Assembly: GCA_964019335.1 (NCBI GenBank)
Contig: OZ025696.1
Coordinates: forward strand, 474,244-538,243
Reading direction: 5' to 3'
DNA length: 64,000 bases
Origin: Diplonema japonicum
Taxonomy: Eukaryota; Protista; Euglenozoa: Diplonemea
Shown here: positions 1-30,851 of the stretch, piece after piece
How positions within the stretch are numbered: the stretch's first letter is position 1
How the letters are laid out: every line of letters starts with the position of its first letter
Made by a program: the position numbers and the translations under genes
Notes under the pieces: generated by a model
The model's database searches: none
The model's input: the letters and a program-made list of their open reading frames with translations, nothing else
Told to the model about the DNA's origin: nothing

Positions 1-536
1 ACCACCACCTCCGTCGAAGCATTCCCCTTCTGTGCCCCAAGGTAGTATGCATTGATGTTCCTGTACACCTCAGGGATGGGGACAGACGCCACGTAGCCGA
101 TGCGGCCCGATGTAGACTGCCCCGCCGACACCACCCCAGACAGGTACCGTGCTTGATACAGCTTTCCAGAGGCCGTTGCGAAGTTGGGCTTCCCGCTGTA
201 ATAGCCTGTCAAGTGCACGAAGTCCACCTCAGGGTACTCGGACGCCGCCTCGAAGGTTTGGTCGTGGAACGTGAATGACGTTGCGAAGATCAGCTGAAAC
301 CCCCTCTTGACAAGATCTGCAATCGTGTCCTTGCACTTCCCTGCCTTCACACTCTCCACCACCTCTGTCCGCACGTACACGTCGTTTCCGACAACCCTCT
401 GCACCGCCTCCACTGCCTCGATCCTCCCCAGGTTGTGGTTGTAGGTCCACCCATAGTCATCCAGGGGGCCACTTAGGATGAACGCAGCCCGCAGGTCACC
501 CACAACCAGGGCAGCGATCACCAGGACCCCGATCAT
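1..536 (-). CDS. Receptor adenylate cyclase paralogue (Bmp-type ectodomain), 5' part only; runs off window start
   Basis: Nearly identical to 4266-4801 and 13485-14020; ATG at 536 (MIGVLVIAALVVGDLRAAFILSGPLDDYGWTYNHNLGR); local divergent patch VQRVVGNDVYVRTEV versus VQQAVGNTTRIQTEV. Confidence 0.9.
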   Translation of the reverse strand, partial: MIGVLVIAALVVGDLRAAFILSGPLDDYGWTYNHNLGRIEAVEAVQRVVGNDVYVRTEVVESVKAGKCKDTIADLVKRGFQLIFATSFTFHDQTFEAASEYPEVDFVHLTGYYSGKPNFATASGKLYQARYLSGVVSAGQSTSGRIGYVASVPIPEVYRNINAYYLGAQKGNASTEVV

Positions 537-1651
537 GTTGACATCAAGAATGGGTGGGATACTGTAGATGAGTGAGCAGGATTAAATTTCAAAAAAAGAA
601 TGAAAATAAAAAAGGAAGAAAACTTAAAATAAAGAAGAGAAGAAGAAGAAGAACACCAACGCAGAGCCAAACGTCATCCATTGTGTGGGTGTCTATTGAA
701 AGGTTTGGCATAATAGGAAACAGATTCGTTGGCATTACATTTCTTCCTTTTCCGCCATCTCCAACTTCTTAGTACCAACATGTGTTTTCAGTTTTTGACT
801 TGTAAAAGTAAAAATACAACACAAGCTAGGAATGTGGCTGAGCTTGAAAATCAAAGCTCCGGCCCCTTCGTTTGTCGTATTCTTTTTCTCCCGTTGAGGG
901 CTAACAGTTCATTATCATGTGATAAGTGGAAAAATGAAATGTTATAGCAAGGTGCTTCAAAGTAATTAGTCGAAAGGGGGAGGGAGTGAGAAAAATATTT
1001 ACCAATGTGAAAGCTACTAACCGGAGTAAAAGAGAGAGAGGGAGAGAGAACGCTTTTGCCAAGTAAAGGAAAGCGTATCCTAGAGGAAGGGGAGACACCG
1101 TTTGAGCCCTCTCATACCCTTGGGGGGACGTACCTAAGTCTTGTCCACCGCTAAGATGCGTAGGCTGTCTCCTGATGCTAAGGGGAGTGGGGGGAAAGCC
1201 ATGGGAAGGACAATAGTGGACAAAGAATGGCAAACAGTTGCGATAACAGAGAAAACGGGAGAAGATTTTGAAAAATTAGGGCGGCTTCCCCTCCGATTTT
1301 CTTTGGAGCACGCTTTTTATGGAATGTAATTTTGCCTTCTCAGGTCACGTCTGGACACCACATGGGGTCAGAGTACAGAAACCCGTCTTCGAAACGCCAC
1401 TTAAATAAAAGGTCAGGAAACAAAAGTCATCACACACATAATTTACATTACATAAGAAAGAAATTCGGGTACCAGTCTTTGGCTCTAAGTTGTTTCTGGA
1501 TGCGTTATTTTCTAACACATCCAGAAACAAATAACACCAGTTTTAGTTTCGACAACAACATTGTTAAACAGAAAGGGGGGCCAAGAATTGCATCGTGAAA
1601 CCCAGTACTTTAGTTTAGACAAGTCAAAAGATTCATTGCACAGAATGGTCT

Positions 1652-4600
1652 TTAACATAAAACCCCAGATTGTGAAGCGTCCGACCTGATAAATTCTAGG
1701 TGCTTTCTCATTTCTGCTATCGCGGCCATGATGACTGTGTCCTCTTCGAGTTCAGCCATCTTCTCACACCTCTTGAATTCGTAGTTATGGAAGGCATCTT
1801 CAAACTCAGGCGACCATGTTGTGTTGAGGTTTTTCTCATTTTCCACGATGTTATCAGTGAGTTGATAGGCCACGACAGCTTCTGCCACAGTTTTGTTAAG
1901 GTTGACGTGGAGGATGGGACGGGTGGAGTAGCTGTCAGCCAGTGAAGCTCTATGCTGTATGTCCCCTGACAACACACAAAAGACGATCCCCATCCCAAGG
2001 TCCTGTGCCTTGCACGACAGCTTGAACGCTATGTCCACTGTCTCCCCTATCACAGAGGCGAAGCGCTGCCGGTGTGTCCCCACAAACCCACTCGAACACT
2101 GCCCTGTCCCAATCCCGATGTGCACAGCAACTGGCAACGCAGTCATTCGCATGGACTCGTGGCAGAGTGTCGCCCACCGCACAGCATTTTGAAGGTGTGC
2201 CGGGCACGGAATTGCGGTGTTCCAGCTCACAACCACAAGTCGGTTGAACACCGATACAACACTACCAGTCGTCCGTTCCAAGTGCGTGACGAAGGAGCCC
2301 ATCGCCGCACAAAGTGTTGTTCTAATATCGTCCTCTTCATCAATGTAATCTACCTGAATCGCGGCTATTGACGATGCCCTGCAGTAATTGAAGCATTGCC
2401 ACCTGCCTGTCGTTGACCTAGATAAGGGCGACGACGCAGAGCTTGTCGATGTCAGCGAGCTGCGGCGATTATTTGTGGGCTTCGCTTCCTCCAGCCTCTC
2501 GGGGAATCTCTTTGGAAGGAGAAGGGTAATCACTTGACCTCCAGAAACACCACGAAACACCACTCCTCCCATCACATGTTTCAGAGGTAGCCCGAGCTCG
2601 AAATCCGACCCTGCCACTTTCATAAAGACCTCAGCCGACACTGCAACACACCCCCCTGGACACACTGCCTCAATCCGAGCCGCCTTGTTCACACACCGAC
2701 CAAAGTAGTCTGTCCGTCCAGACATAGTGTCATTGTCCAGAGCCACCTCACCCTCGTTCACCCCGATCCGCACACGAAGGCCTTTCCACGTCCCTTCCAC
2801 ATACTCGCTTTCTGAGTTTTTCCCCAGTGACTCCGTCCACTTGTCACTGTCGTAGAGGTCTTCCTGAATGTCCAACCCGCACCTGCACGCCGCAAGTGAC
2901 TCCTCGAAGGCCACCATGAAGCTGTCCCCGATCGTCTTCACCTCGTAACCACTGTGCCGGAGGATGCACCCGCGGATCACATGGTTGTGTATGCCAAGGT
3001 TCGTGCACATGTCTTCCGCATCCAGCTCCCACAACATCGTGCTGTGCTGCACGTCTGTGAACAGGATGGCCGCTGTCCCTGTCTTCCCAGGAGGGTTGAT
3101 GTTCAACAGGGGGGACACAAGGCTCTGCTCCTGTGAACTCTTGTTGTCCACCAAAGACTGTGGGAGGTATCGCCTGAACTCTGTGAGGTTGTCGATGATC
3201 TTGATGAAGGAGAGTTGGATCTCGTTCGGGTTTTCGATCTCCCTGATGTACGACACCGCCTCGAGGTTCATGTTCGCAATGGACTCCGCACACTTGATCG
3301 CCACCATCTTGTCGGTGTGCATGAGGTTCAGTGTCTTCCTGCTCTGCGTGAGCTTCAGCACGACCCCCACGATCACAGTCATCATCACCGTCCCGAGCAC
3401 CCCAGCGATGATATAGTAGGTCGTCAGGTCCTGTCCTGTCGAGACACACTCGGTGTTCCCCTCCCCGTAGTTCGTTGTCCCCGACCCGCAAGGGGTGCAC
3501 CCAGCCGACCCGAGCCCAGTGCTGTAGGTCCCCTCCCCACACGGTGTGCAGTTCGCTGAACCCTTTTGCCCAGAGAAGGTACCGGGTAAGCACTGCAAAC
3601 AGATCCTCGGCTCCACCACAGACTCCGAGGCTTCAGCATACCAACCAGAGTCGCACGGCTCGCACACGATGTCGAAGGAGGGGGGGCTGTGGACAAACAC
3701 CTCCCGCGAAGAGGTACCTGCCTGGCACCCCCCGTGGCTCGGAAGGAAGCCGATGTCCACCACCCCATCTATGATGTACTTCATCTTCACCTGAAGGTGG
3801 AACTCGTCCAAGCAGCCAGAGGGGTTCTGCAAGACCCCGTTGTGTACCACAGGGCTGCAGAAGGGGTCGAAGGTCCCTGCCTCGAGCTTTGTCTTCTCTG
3901 CTTGGTACACATCTTCATCCTGTCTGCTCACGAGGAAGGACAGTGGGTAGTTGCGGGAGACGCCCTTGTCATAACCGTACCAGATTGAGCGGTTTGGGTG
4001 CCCCTTGAAGGTGTCGGAGAGGGTGCGGAGCATGTACTCGGTGTAGATGGGACCCCAGTTGAAGTTCGCAGAGGTGAGCACCGACTCCCCGATGGACAGC
4101 CGTTGGTCTCCGTTTGAGCCTGTCGACAGCTTCCCTTGAGCCTTCGCCGTCACAGGGGACGCCTTCGTGTCAGTGTGGTAGGCGATCACATCGCAGCCGA
4201 GCTTCGCAAGCACCTCTGTTGCATACCCTTCCTTCACAGCGTCCATGAAGGTCCCGATCCACAGCACCACCACCTCCGTCGAAGCATTCCCCTTCTGTGC
4301 CCCAAGGTAGTATGCATTGATGTTCCTGTACACCTCAGGGATGGGGACAGACGCCACGTAGCCGATGCGGCCCGATGTAGACTGCCCCGCCGACACCACC
4401 CCAGACAGGTACCGTGCTTGGTACAGCTTTCCAGAGGCCGTTGCGAAGTTGGGCTTCCCGCTGTAGTAGCCTGTCATGTGCACGAAGTCCACCTCAGGGT
4501 ACTCGGATGCTGCCTCGAAGGTTTGGTCGTGGAACGTGAATGACGTCGCGAAGATCAGCTGAAACCCCCTCTTGACAAGATCTGCAATCGTGTCCTTGCA

Positions 4601-4801
4601 CTTCCCTGCCTTCACACTCTCCACCACCTCTGTCTGGATGCGGGTGGTGTTCCCCACTGCTTGCTGCACCGCCTCCACTGCCTCGATCCTCCCCAGGTTG
4701 TGGTTGTAGGTCCACCCATAGTCATCCAGGGGGCCACTTAGGATGAACGCAGCCCGCAGGTCACCCACAACCAGGGCAGCGATCACCAGGACCCCGATCA
4801 T
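1652..4801 (-). CDS. Receptor-type adenylate cyclase: signal peptide, Bmp/PnrA-like periplasmic-binding domain, Cys-rich (GCC2/ephrin-receptor-like) repeats, TM, class III cyclase, degenerate second cyclase domain
   Basis: 1049-aa ORF; Bmp motifs GPLDDYGWTYNHNLGR, LIFATSF, ARYLSGVVSA, IGYVASVPIPEV.RNINAY.LGA; C..C..GT[FY]S repeats; TM YYIIAGVLGTVMMTVIVGVVL; cyclase FTDVQHSTMLWE, GYEVKTIGDSFMVAF, GLRVRIGVN, DYFGRCVNKAARIE. Confidence 0.92.
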   Translation of the reverse strand: MIGVLVIAALVVGDLRAAFILSGPLDDYGWTYNHNLGRIEAVEAVQQAVGNTTRIQTEVVESVKAGKCKDTIADLVKRGFQLIFATSFTFHDQTFEAASEYPEVDFVHMTGYYSGKPNFATASGKLYQARYLSGVVSAGQSTSGRIGYVASVPIPEVYRNINAYYLGAQKGNASTEVVVLWIGTFMDAVKEGYATEVLAKLGCDVIAYHTDTKASPVTAKAQGKLSTGSNGDQRLSIGESVLTSANFNWGPIYTEYMLRTLSDTFKGHPNRSIWYGYDKGVSRNYPLSFLVSRQDEDVYQAEKTKLEAGTFDPFCSPVVHNGVLQNPSGCLDEFHLQVKMKYIIDGVVDIGFLPSHGGCQAGTSSREVFVHSPPSFDIVCEPCDSGWYAEASESVVEPRICLQCLPGTFSGQKGSANCTPCGEGTYSTGLGSAGCTPCGSGTTNYGEGNTECVSTGQDLTTYYIIAGVLGTVMMTVIVGVVLKLTQSRKTLNLMHTDKMVAIKCAESIANMNLEAVSYIREIENPNEIQLSFIKIIDNLTEFRRYLPQSLVDNKSSQEQSLVSPLLNINPPGKTGTAAILFTDVQHSTMLWELDAEDMCTNLGIHNHVIRGCILRHSGYEVKTIGDSFMVAFEESLAACRCGLDIQEDLYDSDKWTESLGKNSESEYVEGTWKGLRVRIGVNEGEVALDNDTMSGRTDYFGRCVNKAARIEAVCPGGCVAVSAEVFMKVAGSDFELGLPLKHVMGGVVFRGVSGGQVITLLLPKRFPERLEEAKPTNNRRSSLTSTSSASSPLSRSTTGRWQCFNYCRASSIAAIQVDYIDEEDDIRTTLCAAMGSFVTHLERTTGSVVSVFNRLVVVSWNTAIPCPAHLQNAVRWATLCHESMRMTALPVAVHIGIGTGQCSSGFVGTHRQRFASVIGETVDIAFKLSCKAQDLGMGIVFCVLSGDIQHRASLADSYSTRPILHVNLNKTVAEAVVAYQLTDNIVENEKNLNTTWSPEFEDAFHNYEFKRCEKMAELEEDTVIMAAIAEMRKHLEFIRSDASQSGVLC

Positions 4802-6065
4802 GTTGACATGTGTAAGTCTTCTACCTGTAGACGTTGGCAGCAGACACAGAGGAAGGTGAAGGCTTAAAAGAGAAACGAGACTTTAGTGGCAAATAGAAGT
4901 GTTTCTTTCTTTCTCGTAGTCGTTCGATATTGGGGGGAAAGGAGGGATAAAGGCAACTCATCTCCTGAGTAAGCCAAGTTAAGTCTTACCAAGAGGCCGC
5001 AACCACGGAATCACGAGCTCTTCTTGTCAGGAAAGGTCAAGTTCTGTACTAATGTGGTATGCCTGTTGTTTTTCCGGATACAGCTACTAAGAGAACTCCG
5101 AGGAATTCTTACAGAGTGTTGCAGAAGGTTTATTGCTACTACTATACCACAGATGAGAATCGTATTGGTGTCTTTGTTGTGCCCATTTATTACGGGTTTT
5201 TTTTGGGGGGGGGGTAGCGCCAACAAATAGTGTCATGGCAGCAATTTTTAAAAACGTATGGTATTTTCATTCGGAAGGGAAACGGAGAAATTCTTTTTTT
5301 ACACCCGTCCTTTGTGCCACTCCCCCCCCAGCTGCGCTCTTCACAGAACAGTACAGTGTCCCGTTTGGGGGAAGAAGAAAAAAAAAGGGGGGGAATGACT
5401 AAACTTAATAAATGGAACAGGTTCTATTTTGTGAGCTTTTCCAAGAACTCAACGATTCTCAAGAAGTAAAAGGGGTCATTGGTCTTTGGCTATTCTTCTT
5501 TGTGTTTTTTTCTTTTTTTTTTCTTTCAATTAAATTTTTTAGGGTGGGTTGAGAAGGAAAAAAAAAAGAAAGAGGGGGGTGTTAAGATGAACCGGTCAAC
5601 CCCCCTCACCCAAGTCTGTTCGAAGGGAACACACGTTAATTTCTGTTCCTCCCCTGGCAAATAATCAGACGAAAATAAAGAAAAAAAAAAAATAGGAACT
5701 CTGGTCCAAGTGCAGTGAGTGACTAAGGAATTAAAACAAAAAAAAATTGATAAAGTTCGGTGTGCGGGTGGGTGCTCACTGTTCAGGGAGAAATTCACAC
5801 TAACCGGTCACCGTTCTGCGGTTGCTGTCCGGTGCCTGCAGTGGCTGTTTGTCGTGATGAGATGGACGGCATCTGGGCGAGAAACAGCTGCTAGGTAGGG
5901 GGCGGTTTGGCTCGAAGAAAAAAAAGAAAAAAAAAAGAAAAAAAACAGAAAAAAAATACCGGTCCATAATGTAACCTTGTGGTTCTGTATATATGAGCTC
6001 GTCCGAAAAAAAATGTCAACACTTTTTTGGGCACCTCCGAAAATTTCTTGTTTTGATTATTTGAG

Positions 6066-6096
6066 CAAAAAAAGGGCAGCATGCAACCATAGGAAG
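6066..6096. repeat. Inverted copy of a piggyBac subterminal sequence
   Basis: AAAAAAGGGCAGCATGCAACCATAGGAAG is the reverse complement of CTTCCTATGGTTGCATGCTGCCCTTTTTT at ~8663-8691. Confidence 0.7.
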
Positions 6097-6985
6097 ATGA
6101 CATACATGGTGTACATGGCGCCGTTCTTTCAATTGCGATGCTTGTTTTGCCATGAGGGTGGCAGGCTTCGCAACCGGCTGCCCCTGGGAAGCGAAAAACG
6201 GAGGTCAGAAAAACGACGAAAAAATGTTTAAAATGCAGTTTAAAAGCTTGAAATGCAGCACCTAGGGTGCATAAAAGTGGTGAACACACACCTTTGTGAC
6301 CCCTGGGTACAACCCAGGGTCGGGTTACTGTTAAAAGTACTTAGAAAAATATATGGCGTTGCATAGCCCCCAAAAAACCGGTTTTTTTAGCCCTATTTTT
6401 TGCTTTTTTGGGGGGTTCCTAAGGGAATTGGCCTAAAAGGCCCATTTTCCTGAATACCCAATTCTTAACACCTGCCTGCTCAACATCGGTATCTTTGGGG
6501 CCATACATGCATTCTCTACCCATCTGCTGAGGTTTGTCATTTTTTTTCTTCTTCAATTAAAAATTGAGAAGTTTGCTTGAAAAGGGCCCTTAAGGGATTT
6601 AAGCCTAAAATGGGCATTGTAGCCTAAAATAATCTGGTATAAACACACTTTACCACGTTTCCGGGCCACCAAGCATCACACCTGAGGCCGGCAAATGCCG
6701 AAAATTACTGGCCATGCATACAGGCGTTCTTTTGCACAATACCTTGTTGATGAAGGAACCTGCTGTTTTGGCTGGAAGTCACACCTGATCAAGCCCCTGC
6801 ACAAAACCAGCAGTTTCTGAAGAGCGATGATCAAGTGCCGACAAATTACACAAAACCTACAGAATTCTGTCAATTTGACATCACCTTCTCAGGCAATCAG
6901 GCTTAGTTTTGACATCAGTGTGAACATTTCGCAGAAGTGAACATAAACCTCATTTAACTATACAAAAATTAAATAAAATATCATA

Positions 6986-8810
6986 TTAAATAAAAATCAG
7001 CCAGATTTTTACTCGGAATTTCTTTTTTCACTCGTTTTTTTTGAAATTCAACTACCCCCTAAACGCCCGCGCGGACGTTTTTGTCCTTATTTCAAAATTT
7101 GCTTTTTCGCTAAGTACTTTTTTGAACACGGCCCCTGGACTTCAAAATATGGCATTGTTGCGCGGTTTATTTTGTCTTGGAACTACATTTTGCGTTAAAA
7201 GTTTTGTTTTAATTGAAACCGGCAGGGTTGGCTTAAAATGAAATCAGATGGTCAAAATAGCAGCGAAAACGTGAGTCTCCCCCGACTGGTCAGAAAAAGA
7301 AGAAAAAGACGATGAGGCGGTCAAAGAGGGGCCGGAAACGATGCTTGGGTGGGAGAAATACTCCCAAAGGCCCGAAACATATCATTTCCGTAAAAAGGTG
7401 GGCTTAGGACACCTCTAGGTGAAGCGGCCAATGAGGAGGGTGTTTTTAATCTTTTTTTTTACACACGCGGTACTTGAGCTCATAGTTTCTTCCACGAACG
7501 GTCGTTTCGGTTCAAAAAAACAGCGGAATCTGAATCTTTCCATCCCAGAGTACAAAATTTGGCTTGGGTTGGTCCTGTTAATGGGTTTACGCTCGGCACC
7601 GAACATGAAGAGCTACTGGACAACAAATTCTAATTTAACCATCCCGGCTTTTGAGAAAATGAGCAAACCAATTCGTTGACATACAGTGCTACCTCACCTT
7701 TGACAACCTGGAAAGCATTTGGAAGGCCTGAAACTGCACCTCATGTGCAGGTTTCTTGACATCATTGTCAACCGGTGTAGGACTGTGCGGACCCCTGGCA
7801 AGTGGTTGTCTGTTGACGACAGTGTTATCCCGACAACAATAAAAGTCATGGCACCACGAAAAAGCAACTCGGTGGGCATCAAGGTAATCGCTACATGCGA
7901 CTCATAAAACTGTTACCTGGCGAATTTCAACATTTTCAGCAAGAAGTCCACAACACAGGACCTAGTCATGCGTACTGTCGACTCCTAAGGGTTTGCTGTC
8001 GACCCCTGACCTGCAAGACCAGCTCCAGGGGACTGGAGTTCGGCATATGAAAACCCGGAAGTGGACCATGGCTTCCCGAGCTTCAAAGAAGAACTTGTTG
8101 GCAAGCTTCTCACCCATGCCCCAAAAACCGATAGCACACACCCCCCGACAACACCGTCACCGACCCCCAAGCGCAAACACGCTAGCAATGAGGATTCCCT
8201 CACTCAGAAATACCCAAAACGTCTCGATTTGACCCTAAATCACACCTCCGAGACCATGATGAACGGAACGAAGGTGAGGAGGGTGCTCTATGCTGTTCCT
8301 GGGTACGGGAAGAAGGTGCAAACGTGGTGCCCCTGTTGCAAAACCCCCTTATGCAAAACGTGTTTTTTACCCTTGCATGCTACCCCGGCTGGAAAAAAAA
8401 CTCGCAAGTTGCTTTTTTCATCCCACAGCCCCAAAAAGTCTCCAGACTGACCTCAATCCTAGAGTTCAGGGCACCAAATAGGGCTGAATGCTGCCCTATT
8501 TAGCCCAGCCATAACTCCACGGACCCCCCACGACAAGACCCCCCAAAATCGGACATAAAAAGTACACCTTCAACCCCCCTCTTACACACATAGTTAAGTG
8601 TTCTCATCTGAATCTGGCACCTGGAATTGAAAATTTTAGTACCGTTTACCCTTTCCTTGCACCTTCCTATGGTTGCATGCTGCCCTTTTTTTGAGTATTT
8701 AAAGCAACAACGAAAATGGGGGGGTACCGTAGATAGGCTCCGGGCGTTTAGGGGCTACTCGTGAAAAAAAGAATTCCTCGTAAAAATCAGGTAATCTGAT
8801 TTTTATTTAA
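6986..8810 (+). mobile_element. Degenerate, internally deleted piggyBac-like DNA transposon
   Basis: Broken ORFs with PGBD motifs FFTHAVLELIVSSTN, EYKIWLGLVLLMGL...YWT, TPGKWLSVDDSVIP...GIKVIATCDS and C-terminal CPCCKTPLCKTCF..H; imperfect terminal inverted repeats (ATAAAAATCAG...CCCCTAAACGCCCG) with TTAA at 6986-6989 and 8807-8810. Confidence 0.8.
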
Positions 8811-8832
8811 TAAATAGTCATTTTTTTTTTTG

Positions 8833-8903
8833 CTGTAAAAGGAAAAACCACCGGAAGGAAAAATGTCCAAAAGCCCTAGCTGACCGGATGATTTTCCTTT
8901 CTG

Positions 8904-8938
<35 letters not shown>

Positions 8939-9178
8939 CCCTTTTCTGTTGCCAAGAGATCAAAAATCAAAACCGAGTAGAACAGTGCTTTTCGGGTTTT
9001 ACAAGAACCAAAATCTTCAGTGACCTTTCATTGACCACTTCTTACTTTTAAGGTTATTATGCTTTCATTTTCATTTCCCGGGAGATTAATCCCCAACTCC
9101 TGGCAGGAAGTACTAAGAACTCAAGAAACAAGTCAAGAAAAATGTCCGGAAGCGGATGATTTTCCTTCTGGTAATGTT

Positions 9179-9218
<40 letters not shown>

Positions 9219-9220
9219 AG
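8833..9220. mobile_element. Possible MITE-like element with palindromic ends
   Basis: GGATGATTTTCC(T)TTCTGGTA occurs twice (~8887, ~9154); the left end CTGTAAAA..CCGGAAGGAAAA mirrors the right end; no clean TSD. Confidence 0.35.
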
Positions 9221-9304
9221 GGAAGGACGATCAAATGCTTAAGAAAAAAAGAGTCGGCTGATCGAACTGACCGAATTATTTTCAAAATTTTGTTGTACTT
9301 GTTC

Positions 9305-9355
<51 letters not shown>

Positions 9356-9828
9356 AAAAAAGAAGAAGAATGAATTTGATATCACTGTTTCTCATATGGT
9401 GTGATACCTAAACCAAATCAGGCAGCGATTACGGTCGAAAGGAAAGAAGGGCACCAATTAAATGGTGCAAGAAAGAAAGAAAAAAAAACTCAAATTAACA
9501 TGCAAACTCCTAAAGCGAAAGCCGCATGCCCTAAAAGGGAGGAGGTATGGTCAGTACTAGGTAGCTCTCAGTTTCGATCTAATCTTGCGACTCCTCCAAG
9601 TGCTGATCTCTTCAGGCAAGTAGCACCCTTCATTGGCTCCCACTAGCATCCCAGCAGGTATGGAGAGTACTTTTCCCGACCACAAAAAAAAAAAGGGAAA
9701 AAAAAAAAAAGAATGACATAACCAATAACAACCCTTTTTTTTTGCAGCATCATACCTTTTAGGTATCCCTGTTCCCGAGGGTTATCTGATGACACAAAAA
9801 AAAGTTCTGGGGAGAACCCCCAGCAGGT

Positions 9829-10002
<174 letters not shown>

Positions 10003-10915
10003 GGGAGTACAAAATAATAAAAAAAAGTTGAAAGGAAGAATAAAATAATGCTGTGAAGATGGGTTGCAAAAAGAAGGGTGAAACAAAAACAGAAGCATAC
10101 AGGGGGGGGGGGGGGGGTTATCAAATGAAGGTAACAGTGGGGTAGTTTTCTTTTCCCCCTCGACGAAAAATCACAAACAGTTGTTAATTGTTGGGGAAAA
10201 AAAACCAGGGATAGGGAGGACGCCACTTTTTTTTTCTTTTTTTTTTTTCTCTTTCCTCCTAGAACCCGAAAAATTAACCATCCACGGTAACCTCGAAAAA
10301 TCTTTTCTCCATCATCCATGGTAACTCCGAAAATTACTACATTTCAAATATTAGTCAAAAAAAAGAAAGAAAAAAAGGAAAAAAAACAGGGGGGGGGAAA
10401 GAGTGTCATGGTGTTTAACAGAACGGTGGAAGAAATACAATGTTACAAGGCTATCGTGTTTGGTGGTAAGTTTTTTTGAGGTTCAGTAGATGGTGGAAAA
10501 TGAAATTCAGGTTTAGCTTAACGGGAAATCATTCATTTGCTTACCGTGTGTAATTTCTTTCTCATTTTTTAACCCCCCCCTCCCCCTGTTGTCATCTTCT
10601 TTTCACTCACATTTTTGCACAGGCGAAAAATTCGGCTCAACACAGGAATGTGAAACAACTTACCGCCATATTTAACTCTCGTTATTCTAAAAATCTCTAC
10701 TCAAAAAAAAAAAAAAAAAAAAAAAAAGAAGAAGAAGAAGAAATAAAATGGAAAGCACAAGTTAAAAGTATGCCTCATAATTTGTTAATTTGAAAAATTA
10801 ACTAAGAAGCATTTACAGCAAATATCCCTCAAAAAAAAAAAAAAAAAAAAAAAGACTCTATTTATCTTATCCCTTCGTGCTGAAGAATCTAGTGGTTTCT
10901 ATTCCACCAACCACG

Positions 10916-13900
10916 TCAGAGCCTCAAGTGCAGCGGCGGCGGTGACAGGGCAGGGGGCATGCCTTCTCTCTTCATCGTTTCCAGGACAATCATGATGACA
11001 GCATCCGAGTGGTCCTCGTCCCTTACTATCTCCTCGCACTTCTTGTAGTCGCTGCTCTTGAAAGCCTCTTCGAACTCTTGTGACCACGAACCCTTCCAGT
11101 AGTCACCATTTTCTGCAAGCTGGTAGGCCACGGCCCCCTCTGTCCCTGAGTCAGTAAGGCGGAGGATGGGACGGGTGGAGAAACTGCTGAATAAAGCGGT
11201 CTTCTGTATGTCCCCTGACAACACACAAAAGACGACCCCCATCCCAAGGTCCTGTGCCTTGCACGACAGCTTGAACGCTATGTCCACTGTCTCCCCTATC
11301 ACAGAGGCGAAGCGCTGCCGGTGTGTCCCCACAAACCCACTCGAACACCGCCCTGTCCCAATCCCGATGTGCACAGCAACTGACGATGTAACCGTCCGCA
11401 TGGACTCGTGGCAGAGTGTCGCCCACCGCACAGCATTTTGAAAGTGTGCCGGGCACAAGATCCCCGTGTTCCAGCTCACAACCACAAGTCGGTTGAACAC
11501 CGATACAACACTACCAGTCGTCCGTTCCAAGTGCGTGACGAAGGAGCCCAGCGTTTCGACAGGGTCGGGGGCGAAGAGAGACTTGCTCCCCATCCATAGC
11601 GCTGCTATTGTTGCTGAGTTGATCTGCTTGAAGTGCAGGCGTCCACTGATCGCGACTGATGAGCGGCGGGACCCTGCACTGGAGAGCGAGCGGGATAGCA
11701 CTGTGCGGATGCACCTCAGTCTCTCGGGGAACCTTCTTGGCAAGAGAAGAGTGATCACATGTTTTCCAGAAACACCACGTAGCTCAACCTCTCCCATCAC
11801 ATGTGTTAGAGGGAGTCCTAGGTCCGACCCTGCCACCTTGCCGAAGACCTCAGCCGACACTGCAACACACCCCCCTTCACACACTGCCTCAATCCGAGCC
11901 GCCTTGTTCACACACCGACCAAAGTAGTCTGTCCGTCCAGACATAGTGTCATTGTCCAGAGCCACCTCACCCTCGTTCACCCCGATCCGCACACGAAGGC
12001 CTTTCCACGTCCCTTCCACATACTCGCTTTCTGAGTTTTTCCCCAGTGACTCCGTCCACTTGTCACTGTCGTAGAGGTCTTCCTGAATGTCCAACCCGCA
12101 CCTGCACGCCGCAAGTGACTCCTCGAAGGCCACCATGAAGCTGTCCCCGATCGTCTTCACCTCATAACCACTGTGCCGGAGGATGCACCCGCGGATCACA
12201 TGGTTGTGTATGCCAAGGTTCGTGCACATGTCTTCCGCATCCAGCTCCCACAACATCGTGCTGTGCTGCACGTCTGTGAACAGGATGGCCGCTGTCCCTG
12301 TCTTCCCAGGAGGGTTGATGTTCAACAGGGGGGACACAAGGCTCTGCTCCTGTGAACTCTTGTTGTCCACCAAAGACTGTGGGAGGTATCGCCTGAACTC
12401 TGTGAGGTTGTCGATGATCTTGATGAAGGAGAGTTGGATCTCGTTCGGGTTTTCGATCTCCCTGATGTACGACACCGCCTCGAGGTTCATGTTCGCAATG
12501 GACTCCGCACACTTGATCGCCACCATCTTGTCGGTGTGCATGAGGTTCAGTGTCTTCCTGCTCTGCGTGAGCTTCAGCACGACCCCCACGATCACAGTCA
12601 TCATCACCGTCCCGAGCACCCCAGCGATGATATAGTAGGTCGTCAGGTCCTGTCCTGTCGAGACACACTCGGTGTTCCCCTCCCCGTAGTTCGTTGTCCC
12701 CGACCCGCAAGGGGTGCACCCAGCCGACCCGAGCCCAGTGCTGTAGGTCCCCTCCCCACACGGTGTGCAGTTCGCTGAACCCTTTTGCCCAGAGAAGGTA
12801 CCGGGTAAGCACTGCAAACAGATCCTCGGCTCCACCACAGACTCCGAGGCTTCAGCATACCAACCAGAGTCGCACGGCTCGCACACGATGTCGAAGGAGG
12901 GGGGGCTGTGGACAAACACCTCCCGCGAAGAGGTACCTGCCTGGCACCCCCCGTGGCTCGGAAGGAAGCCGATGTCCACCACCCCATCTATGATGTACTT
13001 CATCTTCACCTGAAGGTGGAACTCGTCCAAGCAGCCAGAGGGGTTCTGCAAGACCCCGTTGTGTACCACAGGGCTGCAGAAGGGGTCGAAGGTCCCTGCC
13101 TCGAGCTTTGTCTTCTCTGCTTGGTACACATCTTCATCCTGTCTGCTCACGAGGAAGGACAGTGGGTAGTTGCGGGAGACGCCCTTGTCATAACCGTACC
13201 AGATTGAGCGGTTTGGGTGCCCCTTGAAGGTGTCGGAGAGGGTGCGGAGCATGTACTCGGTGTAGATGGGACCCCAGTTGAAGTTCGCAGAGGTGAGCAC
13301 CGACTCCCCGATGGACAGCCGTTGGTCTCCGTTTGAGCCTGTCGACAGCTTCCCTTGAGCCTTCGCCGTCACAGGGGACGCCTTCGTGTCAGTGTGGTAG
13401 GCGATCACATCGCAGCCGAGCTTCGCAAGCACCTCTGTTGCATACCCTTCCTTCACAGCGTCCATGAAGGTCCCGATCCACAGCACCACCACCTCCGTCG
13501 AAGCATTCCCCTTCTGTGCCCCAAGGTAGTATGCATTGATGTTCCTGTACACCTCAGGGATGGGGACAGACGCCACGTAGCCGATGCGGCCCGATGTAGA
13601 CTGCCCCGCCGACACCACCCCAGACAGGTACCGTGCTTGGTACAGCTTTCCAGAGGCCGTTGCGAAGTTGGGCTTCCCGCTGTAGTAGCCTGTCATGTGC
13701 ACGAAGTCCACCTCAGGGTACTCGGATGCTGCCTCGAAGGTTTGGTCGTGGAACGTGAATGACGTCGCGAAGATCAGCTGAAACCCCCTCTTGACAAGAT
13801 CTGCAATCGTGTCCTTGCACTTCCCTGCCTTCACACTCTCCACCACCTCTGTCTGGATGCGGGTGGTGTTCCCCACTGCTTGCTGCACCGCCTCCACTGC

Positions 13901-14020
13901 CTCGATCCTCCCCAGGTTGTGGTTGTAGGTCCACCCATAGTCATCCAGGGGGCCACTTAGGATGAACGCAGCCCGCAGGTCACCCACAACCAGGGCAGCG
14001 ATCACCAGGACCCCGATCAT
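10916..14020 (-). CDS. Receptor-type adenylate cyclase paralogue (same architecture as 1652-4801)
   Basis: 1034-aa ORF; protein identical to the 1652-4801 copy up to AARIEAVC, mosaic thereafter. Confidence 0.92.
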   Translation of the reverse strand: MIGVLVIAALVVGDLRAAFILSGPLDDYGWTYNHNLGRIEAVEAVQQAVGNTTRIQTEVVESVKAGKCKDTIADLVKRGFQLIFATSFTFHDQTFEAASEYPEVDFVHMTGYYSGKPNFATASGKLYQARYLSGVVSAGQSTSGRIGYVASVPIPEVYRNINAYYLGAQKGNASTEVVVLWIGTFMDAVKEGYATEVLAKLGCDVIAYHTDTKASPVTAKAQGKLSTGSNGDQRLSIGESVLTSANFNWGPIYTEYMLRTLSDTFKGHPNRSIWYGYDKGVSRNYPLSFLVSRQDEDVYQAEKTKLEAGTFDPFCSPVVHNGVLQNPSGCLDEFHLQVKMKYIIDGVVDIGFLPSHGGCQAGTSSREVFVHSPPSFDIVCEPCDSGWYAEASESVVEPRICLQCLPGTFSGQKGSANCTPCGEGTYSTGLGSAGCTPCGSGTTNYGEGNTECVSTGQDLTTYYIIAGVLGTVMMTVIVGVVLKLTQSRKTLNLMHTDKMVAIKCAESIANMNLEAVSYIREIENPNEIQLSFIKIIDNLTEFRRYLPQSLVDNKSSQEQSLVSPLLNINPPGKTGTAAILFTDVQHSTMLWELDAEDMCTNLGIHNHVIRGCILRHSGYEVKTIGDSFMVAFEESLAACRCGLDIQEDLYDSDKWTESLGKNSESEYVEGTWKGLRVRIGVNEGEVALDNDTMSGRTDYFGRCVNKAARIEAVCEGGCVAVSAEVFGKVAGSDLGLPLTHVMGEVELRGVSGKHVITLLLPRRFPERLRCIRTVLSRSLSSAGSRRSSVAISGRLHFKQINSATIAALWMGSKSLFAPDPVETLGSFVTHLERTTGSVVSVFNRLVVVSWNTGILCPAHFQNAVRWATLCHESMRTVTSSVAVHIGIGTGRCSSGFVGTHRQRFASVIGETVDIAFKLSCKAQDLGMGVVFCVLSGDIQKTALFSSFSTRPILRLTDSGTEGAVAYQLAENGDYWKGSWSQEFEEAFKSSDYKKCEEIVRDEDHSDAVIMIVLETMKREGMPPALSPPPLHLRL

Positions 14021-14115: not shown

Positions 14116-15213
14116 CTAGGTACCCTCCACAGCGCTGATGATGAGCAGGATCTGATCCTTACATAGCTTCTCCCAGTCGAGGTTAATGGACTTCCAATGG
14201 GTTTTAATGGTGTGGAGGGCTGTGTGTTGGACATCGGAACGGCCTTCTTTGAAGGCGGAGGTGAAGGACTCCGCACAGGTGTCGGGGTCCCTAGCACGGG
14301 AGAGGAGAACCGTTTCGGTCAGAGAACTGAGGCGTCCTAGGTGGAGCTGGTGCGCCACACGACCGACGGCGTAGAGGAGGTGAGGAGGAGGGGGGACAGA
14401 AGTGTAGATGTAGGTGAGCACAGCGAGCATAATTTCGCAAGACATCCGGCAAGCTTCCGAAGGAGAGGATGCGGCTTCAGGCGGAACAATGTTCTCGATG
14501 ACGAGCTGTGTGAGTTTGGAACGGTTCTGTTGGCGTTCACACTGCCGAAGGGCGTCTGCGAAGTAAGAGCTTCGTGATGCTAGGATGCACTTATGCCCGA
14601 GAATGGTGCGCTGCTCACGTCCGCTTTGAACAATGACAGCAACGTCTGCGTACTCATCAGCGTTGACGAGCTTCAGGAGGTCTACCTTGAGCTGCTCGCC
14701 AGGTCCTGCTACATGGGTGTCTTTAATGCTTACGCTTTGCACCCCAACCCGTAAAGCCTGCCGCCCCACGTGCTCCACCACTGTGAACCGTATTGCCACC
14801 GCTTTGAACGTTGGAGAGCAGGTCACAACGCATAACTGGTGGTTGTCTGTGTTGCCTTTCTGCACCTCACCCCTGTTGTAGTCGACCCACGTCATGAAGT
14901 CCGCTGTGTACTGCAGGGTGTACCTTGTGACCCACCATGGCTCCACGGGGTGCCCTTGGGTTGCGACGCCGGTCACCGTGTGGCCTTCTTCATCTCCGTT
15001 TTCCCACCTATTTTTATTCACCAGAGATATCTGTAGGTACTCCCCTTGCCCTCCCCGTGCGACCCATGCCGACAATGGGAAGTGCAGCCTACCGTATGAA
15101 GGCGATGCCACAGAGCTGCTCGCCGTGAAAGCTGATGGCGGGAGGTCGTCCATCGCTAGCTGGCGGTGCTGCAGGTTTGCGTTGTGGTGCGGTGGCGGCG
15201 GCAGCGGGTCCAT
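14116..15213 (-). CDS. Discoidin (F5/8 type C) domain + BTB/POZ domain protein
   Basis: AWVA...EYLQISL, VTGVATQG...WVTRYTLQYT, GNTD, AIRF...ALRV (F5/8C); YADVAVIV...ILGHKCILASRSSYF...LTYIYT (BTB). Confidence 0.85.
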   Translation of the reverse strand: MDPLPPPPHHNANLQHRQLAMDDLPPSAFTASSSVASPSYGRLHFPLSAWVARGGQGEYLQISLVNKNRWENGDEEGHTVTGVATQGHPVEPWWVTRYTLQYTADFMTWVDYNRGEVQKGNTDNHQLCVVTCSPTFKAVAIRFTVVEHVGRQALRVGVQSVSIKDTHVAGPGEQLKVDLLKLVNADEYADVAVIVQSGREQRTILGHKCILASRSSYFADALRQCERQQNRSKLTQLVIENIVPPEAASSPSEACRMSCEIMLAVLTYIYTSVPPPPHLLYAVGRVAHQLHLGRLSSLTETVLLSRARDPDTCAESFTSAFKEGRSDVQHTALHTIKTHWKSINLDWEKLCKDQILLIISAVEGT

Positions 15214-15929: not shown

Positions 15930-17108
15930 CTAACCAGTTCTCTCCCACATATCACCCTCAACTAGGATGCTCTCAGCTCCTTGAAGCACCCCTTCGGGAG
16001 CTTTTATGTACTTCTCGTAATGCTCGGAAAGCTCTGACCCCGAAAGGTCACGAAGGGAAGTGTCCGTCGCGATGACTTCACCAAAGATCTCAGGAAACCC
16101 TGGAGGGAGCACCCCACGGATGAGGCTGGTCTGTGAGGTTGGTTGCCGGGGCATGATGAAGACTTGGTTGCTCGCAAAGAGTAAGTTATAAGGCTGCTCA
16201 CGAGCGTAGAGGTACGCGATGACGCGGCTGAGTAAGTCCGATACAATATCGATGTAAAAAGAGATGTTGCGGATGGCAAAGCCGGGTACTTGGAACTTCT
16301 TTAGGGAATAGATGCGGAGGTCCGGGTGGTACTTGTGCGCGGCCAGGAGCACCTTTTCAGCTTCTTCCACCGGGAGCACACCGCCCTCCCGGGGTCCGTG
16401 GTAACTCCAGAACTGAAAATGCAAATGGTTCACGCTAGCCCCCGCTGCAAGCGAATTAAACCCGACCCTGAAGTCCCTCCCCAATGGGAGGAGCGAGGCC
16501 GCAAACCGCATCCCGACTTCAAGCGCGTCAGAGGTAAGATGCTGCGATCGATTTTCTCGCACATACGGTGCCAAAATGCCTGAATATCTGCTGAGAGGGA
16601 ACTTGTTAGTCATTACGAAGTGTGCTGGATCTAGGTTTTCCACAGGTGTGCATGAGCACCCGTGCCAAGGGACGGGGCTGAAGTAAAACAAAACCTCGTA
16701 TGCAGGGATCTTGTGGAAGTTGAAGAGGGACGAGTTGAAGGGCGTCTGCATGCTCTGCTGTGTGTTCCAGATTGTAGTTCTCCGTTTCTTTCCTCTTGAA
16801 GGGTTGAAGGCGATGTCGAATGTGCCCCTTGCCACTGCCAGCTCCCCAAGGGGGTCCACAGCCTGTTCGTCCCATAGCTTTTTTAAAGTCTTGCCTAGTG
16901 GGAGATTGCTCCCCCCACCACAGCCGAGAACCCTCTTCCCCCTGCACCCCAGAAGGCTTTCTTGCATCGCGTCGGTGTTCTTCCCCCCCGACGTTCCTAT
17001 TGCTATGAAACAAGCCACCATCGTAGCAACCCACATCAGCAACCACCTCCCGGCGTTCACCCTTCCCAACACTGAAGGGTACCCCAGTGTTTGTCTCGGC
17101 CTGTGCAT
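15930..17108 (-). CDS. GDP-D-glucose phosphorylase 1 / VTC2 (GDP-L-galactose phosphorylase)-like HIT-family protein with N-terminal signal anchor
   Basis: FNPSRGKKRR, PFNSSLFNFHKI, NKFPL, FRVGFNSLAAGASVNHLHFQ (HxHxQ), PYNLLF, PGFPEIFG; first ATG at 17108. Confidence 0.85.
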   Translation of the reverse strand: MHRPRQTLGYPSVLGRVNAGRWLLMWVATMVACFIAIGTSGGKNTDAMQESLLGCRGKRVLGCGGGSNLPLGKTLKKLWDEQAVDPLGELAVARGTFDIAFNPSRGKKRRTTIWNTQQSMQTPFNSSLFNFHKIPAYEVLFYFSPVPWHGCSCTPVENLDPAHFVMTNKFPLSRYSGILAPYVRENRSQHLTSDALEVGMRFAASLLPLGRDFRVGFNSLAAGASVNHLHFQFWSYHGPREGGVLPVEEAEKVLLAAHKYHPDLRIYSLKKFQVPGFAIRNISFYIDIVSDLLSRVIAYLYAREQPYNLLFASNQVFIMPRQPTSQTSLIRGVLPPGFPEIFGEVIATDTSLRDLSGSELSEHYEKYIKAPEGVLQGAESILVEGDMWERTG

Positions 17109-17175
17109 CTCTTTCTTTTTTATCACACTTTCCTGTTTTTCTTTCTTTTTTTTCCCCCCCCCACCCCCAAATCGA

Positions 17176-22870: not shown

Positions 22871-23572
22871 TTAATTGCAGCAAGTCGGTTCTGAGGTCGA
22901 CTTCTTGGGAGCTTCATCATCATTGCCTGATGCCTTCTTGCTCAAAAAGAAGTGGAGGTAGGCTTGCCAAGCCAGCCAGCCCAGCCACAAGCCAAAAACA
23001 ACGGCTAAGAAAAGCCCAACATTCATTGTCATTGCAATCAACATAAGGAAGTACCCAAGGGTGATACAGAACAGCATCAGGAAGGCACGGAAGGGGAAGG
23101 GCATCTCGACCTCACGAGCCACATTGTTTGTGAAGCCGCAGATGGCGCCGGCAATGAGAGTGAAGATGACGGCAAAGGCATACATCCCTTCAGAGGTGAC
23201 CTTCCACTCGTCAAAGAGGATAGTCGTTCGGTGCGAGTTGTAGAAGGTCATGGGTGCCATCTCCATGAGATGTGCAGCACCTGGGGTGGGGGTGCCTCCT
23301 GCCTCCACTGAGTTCATGCAATGGCCCATTCTGACACTCCAGTCACACTTCTCGCAGTTGCTGGTCTGACCTGCACACATATCCATCTCCATCATGCACT
23401 CCCCCTTGTCCATCTTGCACCCGTCCATTGCCATGCACATTGTGTGGTTGTGTGCGCTGCAGTCGTCCTCCATCGCCATGCACCTCCCACCGTGTGACAT
23501 GCATTTCATGCAGTGCATCTTGTCCTTCTCGATGCAGGACGCCAAGACCGCTATGGCGAGCAAGGTCAGCAT
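22871..23572 (-). CDS. Ctr-family copper transporter with signal peptide and Met/Cys/His-rich ectodomain
   Basis: MAPMTFY...ILFDEW, three TMs, MxxxM (LMLIAMTMNVGLF), GxxxG (GLWLG), C-terminal CC; probable start MLTLLAIAVLASC at 23572 (upstream part of the track ORF is repeat/poly-A). Confidence 0.92.
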   Translation of the reverse strand: MLTLLAIAVLASCIEKDKMHCMKCMSHGGRCMAMEDDCSAHNHTMCMAMDGCKMDKGECMMEMDMCAGQTSNCEKCDWSVRMGHCMNSVEAGGTPTPGAAHLMEMAPMTFYNSHRTTILFDEWKVTSEGMYAFAVIFTLIAGAICGFTNNVAREVEMPFPFRAFLMLFCITLGYFLMLIAMTMNVGLFLAVVFGLWLGWLAWQAYLHFFLSKKASGNDDEAPKKSTSEPTCCN

Positions 23573-24081
23573 TTTCTTTTTTTTTTTTTTTTTTTTTTTT
23601 GTGTTGGTAGTTAACAGTCTTGTTGTAGCATTCTCGATAAAAAGCAGCTGGGATTTTGTAAGAATAACTGAAGAAGTAGTAAGAAAAAAAGAAATATATA
23701 TATGAGTTAAAGGAGGCCGGTGTTGGTGGTGCCCTGCACAAGAACTGTCTACTTGATTACAGGGGGTGCACCGCGGCCGAGTTGTAGCTTCTTCTGCGTT
23801 CCGCGTCATGTCCTTAATGCATGCGGTGTACAGCTCAACCCCAGCCAGGACGTCCTGGGTAACCAAGATTCTGCACTCGTGCAGTTTGCTGCCTGTTCAT
23901 CACCCTGAGCATCTGCGTTACGTTCTTCCACTTGGGCGCTACCAGTGATGACCGACGAGGAGGTCAACAGCGAACAACACATCTGATGTTTTTCTTATAT
24001 TTTCATGTTATCCCCACCACCTTAAAAAAAAGAATGCGGTATGTGACACAGTGGCCACCCTTGTGAAACTTCGCCCCAAAG

Positions 24082-24224
24082 CAGTGATGGGTGAATCCAG
24101 TCCGGTCTGGTGTACCCAATTTACCGGACTGACCGGACTGACTGGACTCGAAAATTTTCTGCAATTTTTGACACACCTGCAAACACTTTTTTTTCAAATA
24201 TTTTTGGACAATGATTTTTTTTTC

Positions 24225-24262
<38 letters not shown>

Positions 24263-25587
24263 CTTCTTCTTCTTCTTCTTTGTACCACAGACATGCACAG
24301 CTCCATCAAGCAATTTGCACCTATCTACTCCAGTGCACTGCAGCTGCAGGTATGTACATATGTCCGGAAATGTTGTATTTGGATGTAACCCGGCTGTGGT
24401 GATCAACGTGGAACGCAGAAGAAGCTACAACCTGGCCGTGGTGAGAGATATATGAGTTAAAGGACCTGCACAAGACTACTTGATTACAGGGGGTACACCA
24501 CAGCTGAGTTGTAGCTTCTTCTGCGTTCCGTGTTCCGTCTCCTTAATGTGTGCGGTGTTCAGCTCAACCCCAGCCGGGGCGTCCCAGGTAACCAGATTCT
24601 GCTCATGCAGGGGTGGGTCGTTCCGTTCCCTTCCGCCAAACTGAAAAGTCGGAGCTTGGTGGAACGGCAGAACCAGGGAATTCCTTACCTTTTTTTTTTT
24701 TTTTTTTTTTTTTTCCTATTGTCCTTAATCACCACAGCCGGGTTGTAGCTTCTTCTGCGTTCCACGTCATGTCCTTAATGTGTGCAGTGTTCAGTTCAAC
24801 CCCAGCCAGGGCGTCCTGGGTAACCAAGATTCTGCTCATGCAGGGGTGGGTCGTTTTGTTCCCTTCTGCCAAACTGAAAAGTCGGAACTTGGTGGAACTG
24901 GAACTTGGCAGACAGGGAATTCCTAACCTATTTTTTTTTTTTTTTTCCCCCTTTTTTTTTCCCCCTTTTTTTTTTTTTTTTTTTCCTCTTTGCATCATCA
25001 AGGTTGAAAGTGGTGACTATATCACCACAACACTGACAGCACAATATTCCGTGTTGTGTCCTTAATGTGTGCAGTGTGCAGCTCAACACCAGAGCATCTG
25101 CAATACGTTCCTCCACTTGGGCGCTACCAGTGATGACCGACGTGGAGGTCAACAGCGAACAACACATCTGATGTACTTCTTATATTTCCATGTTATCTCC
25201 ACCACCTGAATGATATATATATGAGTTAAAAGAGGCCGGTGTTGGTGGTGCCCTGCACAAGAACTGTCTACTTGATTACAGGGGGCACACTGCAACCGAG
25301 TTGTAGCTTCTTCTGCATTCCGTGTCATGTCTTTAATGTGTGTGGTGTTCAGCTCAACCCCAGCCAGAGTGTCCCAGGTAACCAAGATTCGGCACTTGTG
25401 CAGTTTGCTGCCTGTTTGTCACCCTGAGCATCTGCATTATGTTCTTCCACTCAGGCGCTACCAGGGAGCTACTGGTGATGACAGGGGTGGGTCGTTCCGT
25501 TCCCTTCTGCCAAACTGAAAAGTCGGAACTTGGTGGAACGGCGGAACCGGAACTTGGCGGAACATGGTGGAACAGGGAATCCTTACC

Positions 25588-25621
<34 letters not shown>

Positions 25622-26235: not shown

Positions 26236-26239
26236 CTGC

Positions 26240-26263
26240 TGCTGTGGCTGCTGTGATTGCTGT

Positions 26264-26295
<32 letters not shown>

Positions 26296-30515: not shown

Positions 30516-30574
30516 AATTAACGTCCTGAGGGATGGGTTGCACTTGCCCCTGTACCCTAAGGCTCCTCCTAACG

Positions 30575-30655
30575 GGCTGCTGGGAGAATTGAACCGACGC
30601 TACTAGAAGGCTGCCCATACACTAACCAACTAGACCATGATCGATCCCAGCAGCC
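30575..30655 (-). ncRNA. tRNA-like / Pol III A-box and B-box element closed by an 11-bp terminal stem (SINE head or small ncRNA)
   Basis: Minus strand GGCTGCTGGGA...TGGTCTAGTTGG (A box)...GGTTCAATTC (B box)..TCCCAGCAGCC; no clean cloverleaf. Confidence 0.45.
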
Positions 30656-30851
30656 ACCAGATGCAAAAAAATGAAGACGAATAACTGAAAAGGCCTGAAA
30701 ATTGCTCAGTGTAAAAATCAGATTTTACTTCACATTTACAGCACTTTTTTAAGCCAAATTCGGCCATTACTTTACCTTTGTTCTTCACTTTACAGGAGGT
30801 GCCACGTGAAGGCTGTGAGTTGGGTTTTATCCTCCTTTCTGTGTGCCTCAG

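Follow-up and report, generated by a model that had tools for sequence, protein, structure and literature searches.

Tandem receptor adenylate cyclases of Diplonema japonicum with a Bmp flytrap of putative purine-base type

The window considered here, that is, the whole stretch of DNA that was analysed (64,000 nucleotides of Diplonema japonicum, contig OZ025696.1, G000:C49:474244-538243), carries in its left 14 kb, on the minus strand, an array of three tandem paralogous genes for putative receptor adenylate cyclases with a Bmp-type Venus-flytrap domain at the N-terminus. The open reading frames (ORFs) of all three paralogues are intact. The original prediction, made from the letters of this stretch, described two full copies and a third 5′ end, and the ORFs bear this out, with copy A being completed just to the left of the window (G000:C49:471663-474779, 1038 aa). 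The three genes and the domains of copy B are as follows.

1..536, minus strand: copy A, first 178 codons, signal peptide and Bmp N-lobe (ORF); the remainder lies left of the window
1652..4801, minus strand: copy B, complete coding sequence, 1049 aa (ORF and Pfam)
4751..4801, minus strand: copy B, signal peptide, aa 1-17 (hydropathy; start codon conserved in the three copies)
3830..4762, minus strand: copy B, Bmp or Venus-flytrap ligand-binding domain, aa 14-324 (Pfam, PDB sequence search, pocket alignment, Foldseek)
3437..3814, minus strand: copy B, Cys-rich stalk, aa 330-455 (Pfam, match to mastigoneme 8tx1, alignment, hydropathy)
3350..3418, minus strand: copy B, single transmembrane helix, aa 462-484 (hydropathy, AlphaFold model)
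3149..3313, minus strand: copy B, conserved juxtamembrane helical module, aa 497-551 (alignments, model, profile search)
2510..3085, minus strand: copy B, first cyclase homology domain (CHD1), a class III adenylate cyclase domain that is catalytically complete by its residues, aa 573-764
1847..2431, minus strand: copy B, second cyclase homology domain (CHD2), a degenerate domain of cyclase fold, aa 791-985
10916..14020, minus strand: copy C, complete coding sequence, 1034 aa (ORF and comparison with copy B)

When the 62.5-Mb assembly was searched with the protein and with the Pfam families, only three array copies were recovered. One further weak Bmp match was returned by the same searches on another contig, namely an 848-aa ORF (L010 1985-4531, plus strand, = G000:C2:478484-481030) with a marginal score of 24.4 bits over profile positions 96-215. 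The three copies have their start codon in common, and the sequence upstream of it differs among them.

The order of parts that had been read from the sequence (signal peptide, Bmp domain, Cys-rich repeats, transmembrane helix, cyclase and dead cyclase) is correct at every structural point in Pfam, hydropathy and alignments. Among the three families named for a HMMER check, the Bmp family PF02608 is matched with an E-value of 6e-39 over aa 16-297 (134 bits against a gathering cut-off of 24.1, profile positions 3-282 of 301), Guanylate_cyc PF00211 is matched in two stretches with an E-value of 3e-25, and Ephrin_rec_like PF07699 reaches 22.9 bits against a cut-off of 23.1 in the array copies and 31-46 bits in their orthologues. 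The stalk has 12 Cys invariant across the family, spanning aa 315-452, and its repeats are of the GCC2/GCC3 or Ephrin_rec_like type. Since hydropathy gives two hydrophobic segments only (aa 1-24 and 462-484), which are the N-terminal signal and one transmembrane helix, the predicted topology is type I (N-out), with the flytrap outside the cell and the cyclase inside.

As for the flytrap, its closest relatives among all PDB sequences are Brucella 3S99 (E 2e-51) and Pseudomonas AtzT (6PI5, E 3e-48), followed at a distance by Med (5e-12); the remaining solved Bmp proteins are weaker, and the nucleoside binders BmpA, BmpD and pneumococcal PnrA stand at 1e-6 to 1e-7 (phmmer). The comparison of the AlphaFold model by Foldseek gives the same order: ranks 1-7 are AtzT/3S99 structures (6e-23 to 1e-21, about 30% identity), and PnrA, BmpD, Lbp and RfuA follow at about 1e-12 to 1e-13 with 17-18% identity, a likeness of fold only. 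The original prediction had called the ectodomain a nucleoside-binding module and had proposed PnrA-type nucleoside binders for the structural comparison; in this wording the claim is not supported, as the nearest relatives bind purine bases, PnrA, BmpD and Lbp are remote, and the structural ranking puts AtzT/3S99 well above PnrA and BmpD. By these alignments the ectodomain falls within the purine-base-binding branch of Bmp proteins represented by 3S99 and AtzT, and its pocket is retained.

It has been reported that AtzT co-purifies with guanine, which it binds with a dissociation constant of 110 nM, that adenine is bound at 2.5 uM and GTP is not bound, and that ammeline and 2-hydroxyatrazine are also taken into the pocket (PMC6834077). 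The base is sandwiched between Tyr45 and Trp194 and is further contacted by Ser97, the Phe98 backbone, Glu165, Asn218 and Asn220, and in 3S99 adenine has been modelled in the same site (PMC6834077). These positions were mapped onto the diplonemid proteins through the alignment, in which a numbering offset of +5 holds at 8 checked positions. The pocket of copies B and C accordingly reads W30, S87, F88, R130, E156, N160, F185, M186, D187, H209 and D211; that is to say, the diplonemid signature is W-S-F-R-E-N-F-M-D-H-D, against W-S-F-R-E-G-W-F-D-H-D in 3S99, which is also the majority signature among 151 bacterial relatives. AtzT positions 218 and 220 correspond to H209 and D211, the same residues as in 3S99, and the hydrogen-bonding residues of the 3S99-type pocket are all kept in copies B and C. 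In a bacterial relative (P0121), a domain of the purine nucleoside phosphorylase superfamily is fused to the same type of Bmp domain, which fits a purine-related ligand for this branch. Because 3S99 and AtzT are nearest by a wide margin and their pocket signature is retained, the likely ligand is a purine base in free form or a flat heterocycle resembling one, which is a better guess than a nucleoside.

The three copies are not equally distant from each other along their length. Codons 247-715 are almost nucleotide-identical in copies A, B and C. Between copies B and C there is no nucleotide difference up to and including codon 618; their first amino-acid difference is at codon 715, and they are diverged in the linker, CHD2 and tail. 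In comparisons between copies, the linker and the C-terminal tail show more than one nucleotide difference per codon, while the CHD2 core is conserved. In the 5′ part, copy A differs from B and C only within codons 47-246 (14 synonymous and 15 non-synonymous codons), and its replacements fall in three patches at 47-56, 186-189 and 211-214, of which the second follows immediately on the stacking Phe. Near the pocket, the differences of copy A from B/C are MDAV186-189HNPA and D211N, with 211 being the position of AtzT Asn220, and the Asp/Asn switch at this position recurs across the family. The copies thus look like mosaics, in a pattern that suggests gene conversion over the 5′ two-thirds with differences retained at the pocket; since the differences of copy A adjoin the pocket, the array possibly covers two ligand specificities.

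In the intracellular part, the best matches of CHD1 are the catalytic domains of T. brucei GRESAG4.3/4.1 (E 9e-25, Foldseek TM-score 0.78). Its six catalytic residues are the metal ligands D583 and D626, K622 and D698 for ATP specificity, and N705 and R709 for the transition state; they are invariant or nearly so in alignments of 12 and of 22 relatives and correspond one-to-one with those of active GRESAG4 cyclases. The cyclase motifs named beforehand are therefore real (FTD583, EVK622, IGD626, TD698YFG and VN705KAAR709). As for the earlier claim that a bacterial-type nucleoside-binding module is wired to cAMP synthesis, what stands is that one polypeptide joins the Bmp domain to a catalytically complete cyclase domain and a dead one, in a tandem array, and what is not supported is the nucleoside identity.

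CHD2 conserves none of the six catalytic residues. Family alignments show that it has a conserved motif of its own, made up of R843, G846, W860, G900, G905, G908 and Q912. Its assignment to the cyclase fold is based on the second Pfam stretch, weak PDB matches, AlphaFold with Foldseek, and Atlas features, which for CHD2 point to Guanylate_cyc clusters. AlphaFold modelled it poorly with 12 sequences and well with 22; in the 22-sequence model, the mean pLDDT is 80 over the intracellular part and 70-92 in CHD2, and the strands and helices of CHD2 follow in the same order as those of CHD1. Foldseek aligned this model over 455-500 columns with chains having two such domains (AC9 and soluble adenylyl cyclase), at a root-mean-square deviation of about 20 A; both CHD1 and CHD2 are thus cyclase folds in the model, and at such a deviation no C1-C2-like packing is predicted despite this. 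A profile-profile comparison of CHD1 with CHD2 was not significant. A single-sequence search of a 5.8-billion-protein collection with CHD2 alone (aa 790-990) gave no match, a result that is uninformative for so divergent a domain, and local profiles did detect it.

Module profiles were built from the 22-sequence alignment and run on the collected homologous proteins. In nearly every diplonemid receptor examined, the 55-residue juxtamembrane module and CHD2 occur together. They also occur together in receptors that have no CHD1 (P0006, P0151, P0154, P0107-P0109, P0116, P0146, P0195, P0203, P0244 and P0040), among which P0040 is of the 5′-nucleotidase type and several others end in protein kinases. 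The cyclases of fungi, trypanosomes, Euglena and Pigoraptor match the CHD1 profile only. As CHD2 is kept with the juxtamembrane module where CHD1 is missing, its distribution speaks against a decaying duplicate and for a non-catalytic module that is conserved as part of a receptor chassis specific to this lineage; the pseudo-cyclase seems to be in general use as a module of diplonemid receptors.

The same full architecture is found at 37-39% identity in Diplonema papillatum (KAJ9463902.1, a hypothetical protein by its annotation), Lacrimia lanifica and Namystynia karyoxenos, and further full-architecture proteins lie on several large ENA contigs, with three paralogues on one 459-kb contig. All close homologues come from diplonemids. 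The orthologues of Lacrimia and Namystynia are transcribed, because their sequences come from transcriptomes.

The flytrap also served as query for an exhaustive HMMER search beyond this group, and many long proteins are among the best 150 of its 4646 matches. According to Pfam scans, the same ectodomain is present on protein kinases in Sulcionema, Artemidia and Namystynia, and on the seven-transmembrane cores of class C G-protein-coupled receptors (GPCRs) in Stygamoeba and other protists. In Pigoraptor chileana (P0257 / P0152, EukProt), it is joined to EGF, kinase-homology, HNOBA and guanylate cyclase domains in the animal style; this organism is a close unicellular relative of animals, and the Bmp domain here replaces the ANF-receptor domain of the animal membrane guanylyl cyclase layout. 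Bmp ectodomains have already been published on 13 Grl class C GPCRs of Dictyostelium (PMC1885808), of which GrlL/fAR1 is the receptor for folate and lipopolysaccharide (LPS) (PMC5969738). Eukaryotic receptors with a bacterial-type Bmp module are thus not new; the fusion of such a module to a euglenozoan adenylate cyclase is new as far as the searchable literature goes, in which no paper describing it was found. The architecture, of which the original prediction knew no characterised eukaryotic receptor, is indeed uncharacterised in this sense but not unique, given the published Grl receptors, the orthologues and the other fusions.

The phylogeny of the ectodomain with bacterial Bmp proteins, which had also been proposed, was inferred by maximum likelihood with a quick search from 197 domains, the Dictyostelium Grl sequences not being included. 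A branch with moderate support (SH-aLRT 90) separates the 42 domains of eukaryotic receptors from the 155 bacterial-type proteins, a few of which carry added domains. Among the diplonemid receptors, the cyclase-linked and kinase-linked ones are interleaved.

Compared with known systems, the array proteins are in some respects closest to the receptor cyclases of trypanosomatids (T. brucei ESAG4/GRESAG4; PDB 1FX2, 1FX4). Both are euglenozoan type I proteins with a single membrane pass, the catalytic domain of the trypanosomatid proteins is the closest one solved, and in both the six residues lie in one CHD, hence activity only as a homodimer. However, the trypanosomatid ectodomains belong to the PF25495, PF25493 and PF13458 (Peripla_BP_6) families and are coupled to a single CHD without a Cys-rich stalk, whereas Bmp and CHD2 are found here, and the trypanosomatid proteins (P0039) give no match to the diplonemid juxtamembrane module or CHD2. 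With 3S99 and AtzT, the diplonemid flytrap shares about 30-40% identity over its whole length and the same stacking and hydrogen-bond signature; unlike it, they are soluble or lipid-anchored binding proteins of ABC transporters, with no fusion to stalk, transmembrane helix and cyclase, and their second stacking residue is Trp, where diplonemids have Phe. The Grl GPCRs of Dictyostelium (such as GrlJ, and GrlL = fAR1) are likewise eukaryotic surface receptors with a Bmp flytrap as the ligand-binding module (PMC1885808), and the GPCR-linked Bmp domains of other amoebae, Stygamoeba among them, fall together with the diplonemid ones on the same side of the branch described above, away from the bacterial ones. 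The Grl output, in contrast, runs through seven transmembrane helices and G proteins, and the Ephrin_rec_like stalk, the juxtamembrane module and any CHD are missing.

The animal membrane guanylyl cyclases of the NPR-A type also follow the scheme of flytrap ectodomain, one transmembrane helix and cyclase, and the flytrap of Pigoraptor P0257 is even a Bmp domain from the eukaryotic clade to which the diplonemid one belongs. But these proteins have a kinase-homology domain and coiled-coil before a single CHD of animal guanylyl cyclase type, whereas the diplonemid proteins have the juxtamembrane module, a CHD1 that is ATP-specific by its residues and a pseudo-CHD2 instead. Mammalian transmembrane adenylyl cyclases (tmACs, with C1-C2) and soluble AC10 resemble the array proteins in having two cyclase folds per chain, one of them not fully catalytic, but their catalytic residues are split between complementing C1 and C2, while the diplonemid CHD1-CHD2 pair in cis should not be able to form an active site. 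A tmAC-like complementary pair was considered and rejected, with CHD1 holding all six residues, none being conserved in CHD2 and the model lacking C1-C2-like packing.

Receptor-type adenylate cyclases are abundant in Euglenozoa, trypanosomes included, and to our knowledge none of them has a known ligand. The active site of class III cyclases spans the dimer interface, with the metal Asps coming from one subunit and the Lys, Asp, Asn and Arg from the other. Since CHD1 has all six residues and CHD2 none, only a CHD1:CHD1 pairing between two chains would be active, so that cAMP is expected to be made only by this dimer in trans. In class C GPCRs, a rigid Cys-rich stalk serves as signal relay. In the proposed mechanism, the flytrap would close on a free purine base (of the type of adenine, hypoxanthine or guanine) or on a flat N-heterocycle resembling it, and in a receptor dimer this closure would be relayed via the rigid Cys-rich stalk, the transmembrane helix and the juxtamembrane module and would alter the pairing of the two CHD1 domains, with CHD2 acting as a scaffold or regulator. 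As to the direction of the ligand effect on the cyclase, we lean slightly to activation. Overall, a type I receptor adenylate cyclase in which a purine-base-type flytrap controls CHD1 pairing, with CHD2 as scaffold or regulator, is the explanation that we prefer, and we hold it to be somewhat probable. With regard to the pocket differences between copy A and copies B/C, the array would probably cover two ligand specificities, and its likely use would be the sensing of purines released by prey or lysed cells. The complete picture, in which a one-component purine-base chemoreceptor of two specificities converts prey or lysed-cell cues into cAMP on a diplonemid-specific chassis of juxtamembrane module and pseudo-cyclase that is also used in receptor kinases, is put forward only tentatively.

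Several observations weigh against this preferred explanation. The second stacking Trp is replaced by Phe at position 185 in 17/17 close diplonemid relatives, where 145/151 bacterial proteins have Trp, which by alignment makes the pocket a somewhat changed one. The panel tested on AtzT held no nucleosides (PMC6834077), and a base-only pocket is thus unproven. For the Bmp-GPCRs of Dictyostelium, the reported ligands are folate/LPS, polyphosphate or a protein, so a Bmp ectodomain does not dictate a purine ligand. A confident arrangement of the domains was not obtained from AlphaFold (pTM 0.36-0.48), and the dimer mechanism therefore rests on general class III enzymology. Finally, the DNA of the array matched six sequencing runs from three studies, none of which is recorded as RNA. 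That a different flat heterocycle or an unrelated ligand (a pterin or folate as a cue of bacterial prey, a flavin or a triazine-like compound) is bound in a repurposed purine pocket is an alternative of limited probability: AtzT holds ammeline and 2-hydroxyatrazine in the same pocket, GrlL, with a Bmp domain, is a folate/LPS receptor (PMC1885808, PMC5969738), the riboflavin binder RfuA has the same fold, and the change at 185 is fixed in the diplonemid clade, but the hydrogen-bonding residues of the 3S99-type pocket are all retained. The guanine-like edge of a pterin would use the same contacts, and this alternative therefore overlaps with the purine-base explanation. We regard it as unlikely that the flytrap binds adenosine, inosine or guanosine in the manner of PnrA/BmpD and drives cAMP synthesis in this way. 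The nucleoside binders belong to the same Pfam family and fold, and the gap in the AtzT panel leaves room for them, but they are only 17-18% identical, with E-values at least 40 orders of magnitude weaker than those of the base binders, and the pocket signature is of the 3S99/AtzT type, of which AtzT does not bind GTP.

The output of the trypanosome ESAG4-type cyclases has been proposed to depend on stress or membrane state. By analogy, the cyclase of the array could be ligand-independent, its cAMP production being set by stress or membrane state and its ectodomain serving nutrient capture, adhesion or trafficking; the closeness of the catalytic domain to the ESAG4-type family, and the fact that we know of no ligand for any euglenozoan receptor cyclase, agree with such a role. 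It is nevertheless very unlikely in our estimation, since conservation of the pocket residues extends over the diplonemid genera and over cyclase-linked and kinase-linked receptors alike, and the stalk, transmembrane and juxtamembrane modules are strongly conserved, which together argues for selection for ligand-coupled signalling. Least credible of all is that the array is non-functional, being an assembly duplicate, bacterial contamination or a set of pseudogenes. The nucleotide identity of copies B and C over the first 618 codons could be taken in this sense, but the three ORFs of more than 1030 aa are intact, their 3′ parts have diverged and the spacers are different, the array sits in a 538-kb eukaryotic contig, its DNA is present in runs of three studies, and there are orthologues in five diplonemid genera. 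Bacterial contamination and assembly artefact were rejected on these grounds.

The purine-base explanation, with the ectodomain in a structurally solved branch that has a defined purine-base pocket, makes the idea about the ligand testable with a short list of compounds; if it is true, these proteins would be the first euglenozoan receptor adenylate cyclases with a predictable small-molecule ligand. The Bmp flytraps of a single eukaryotic clade are connected to four kinds of output, namely seven-transmembrane cores, kinases, animal-type guanylyl cyclase and euglenozoan adenylate cyclase, a clear example of receptors evolving through the shuffling of modules. In addition, the pair of juxtamembrane module and pseudo-cyclase, with or without a catalytic domain, represents an undescribed signalling chassis in the diplonemids, which are among the ocean's most diverse protists.

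The 6.1-kb spacer between copies B and C (4802-10915) contains, at 7419-7679 on the plus strand, part of a piggyBac-type transposase (DDE_Tnp_1_7, E 2e-9) with long (CA)n and poly-A/T tracts on either side. This probably accounts for the extra length of about 5 kb over the spacer between A and B. The window also contains, at 34969-41982 on the plus strand, another large cyclase gene that is unrelated to the array: its 2337-aa ORF encodes TmcB-like TPR repeats and, at the C-terminus, a Guanylate_cyc domain (E 1e-44). A strand-switch region is located at about 24000-31500, with large ORFs on the minus strand to its left and on the plus strand to its right, as in polycistronic euglenozoan clusters. 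Among the minus-strand genes are the following.

14116-15213, minus strand: protein with BTB and F5/8C domains
15930-17126, minus strand: ORF with an HxHxQ motif
22871-23866, minus strand: Ctr copper transporter

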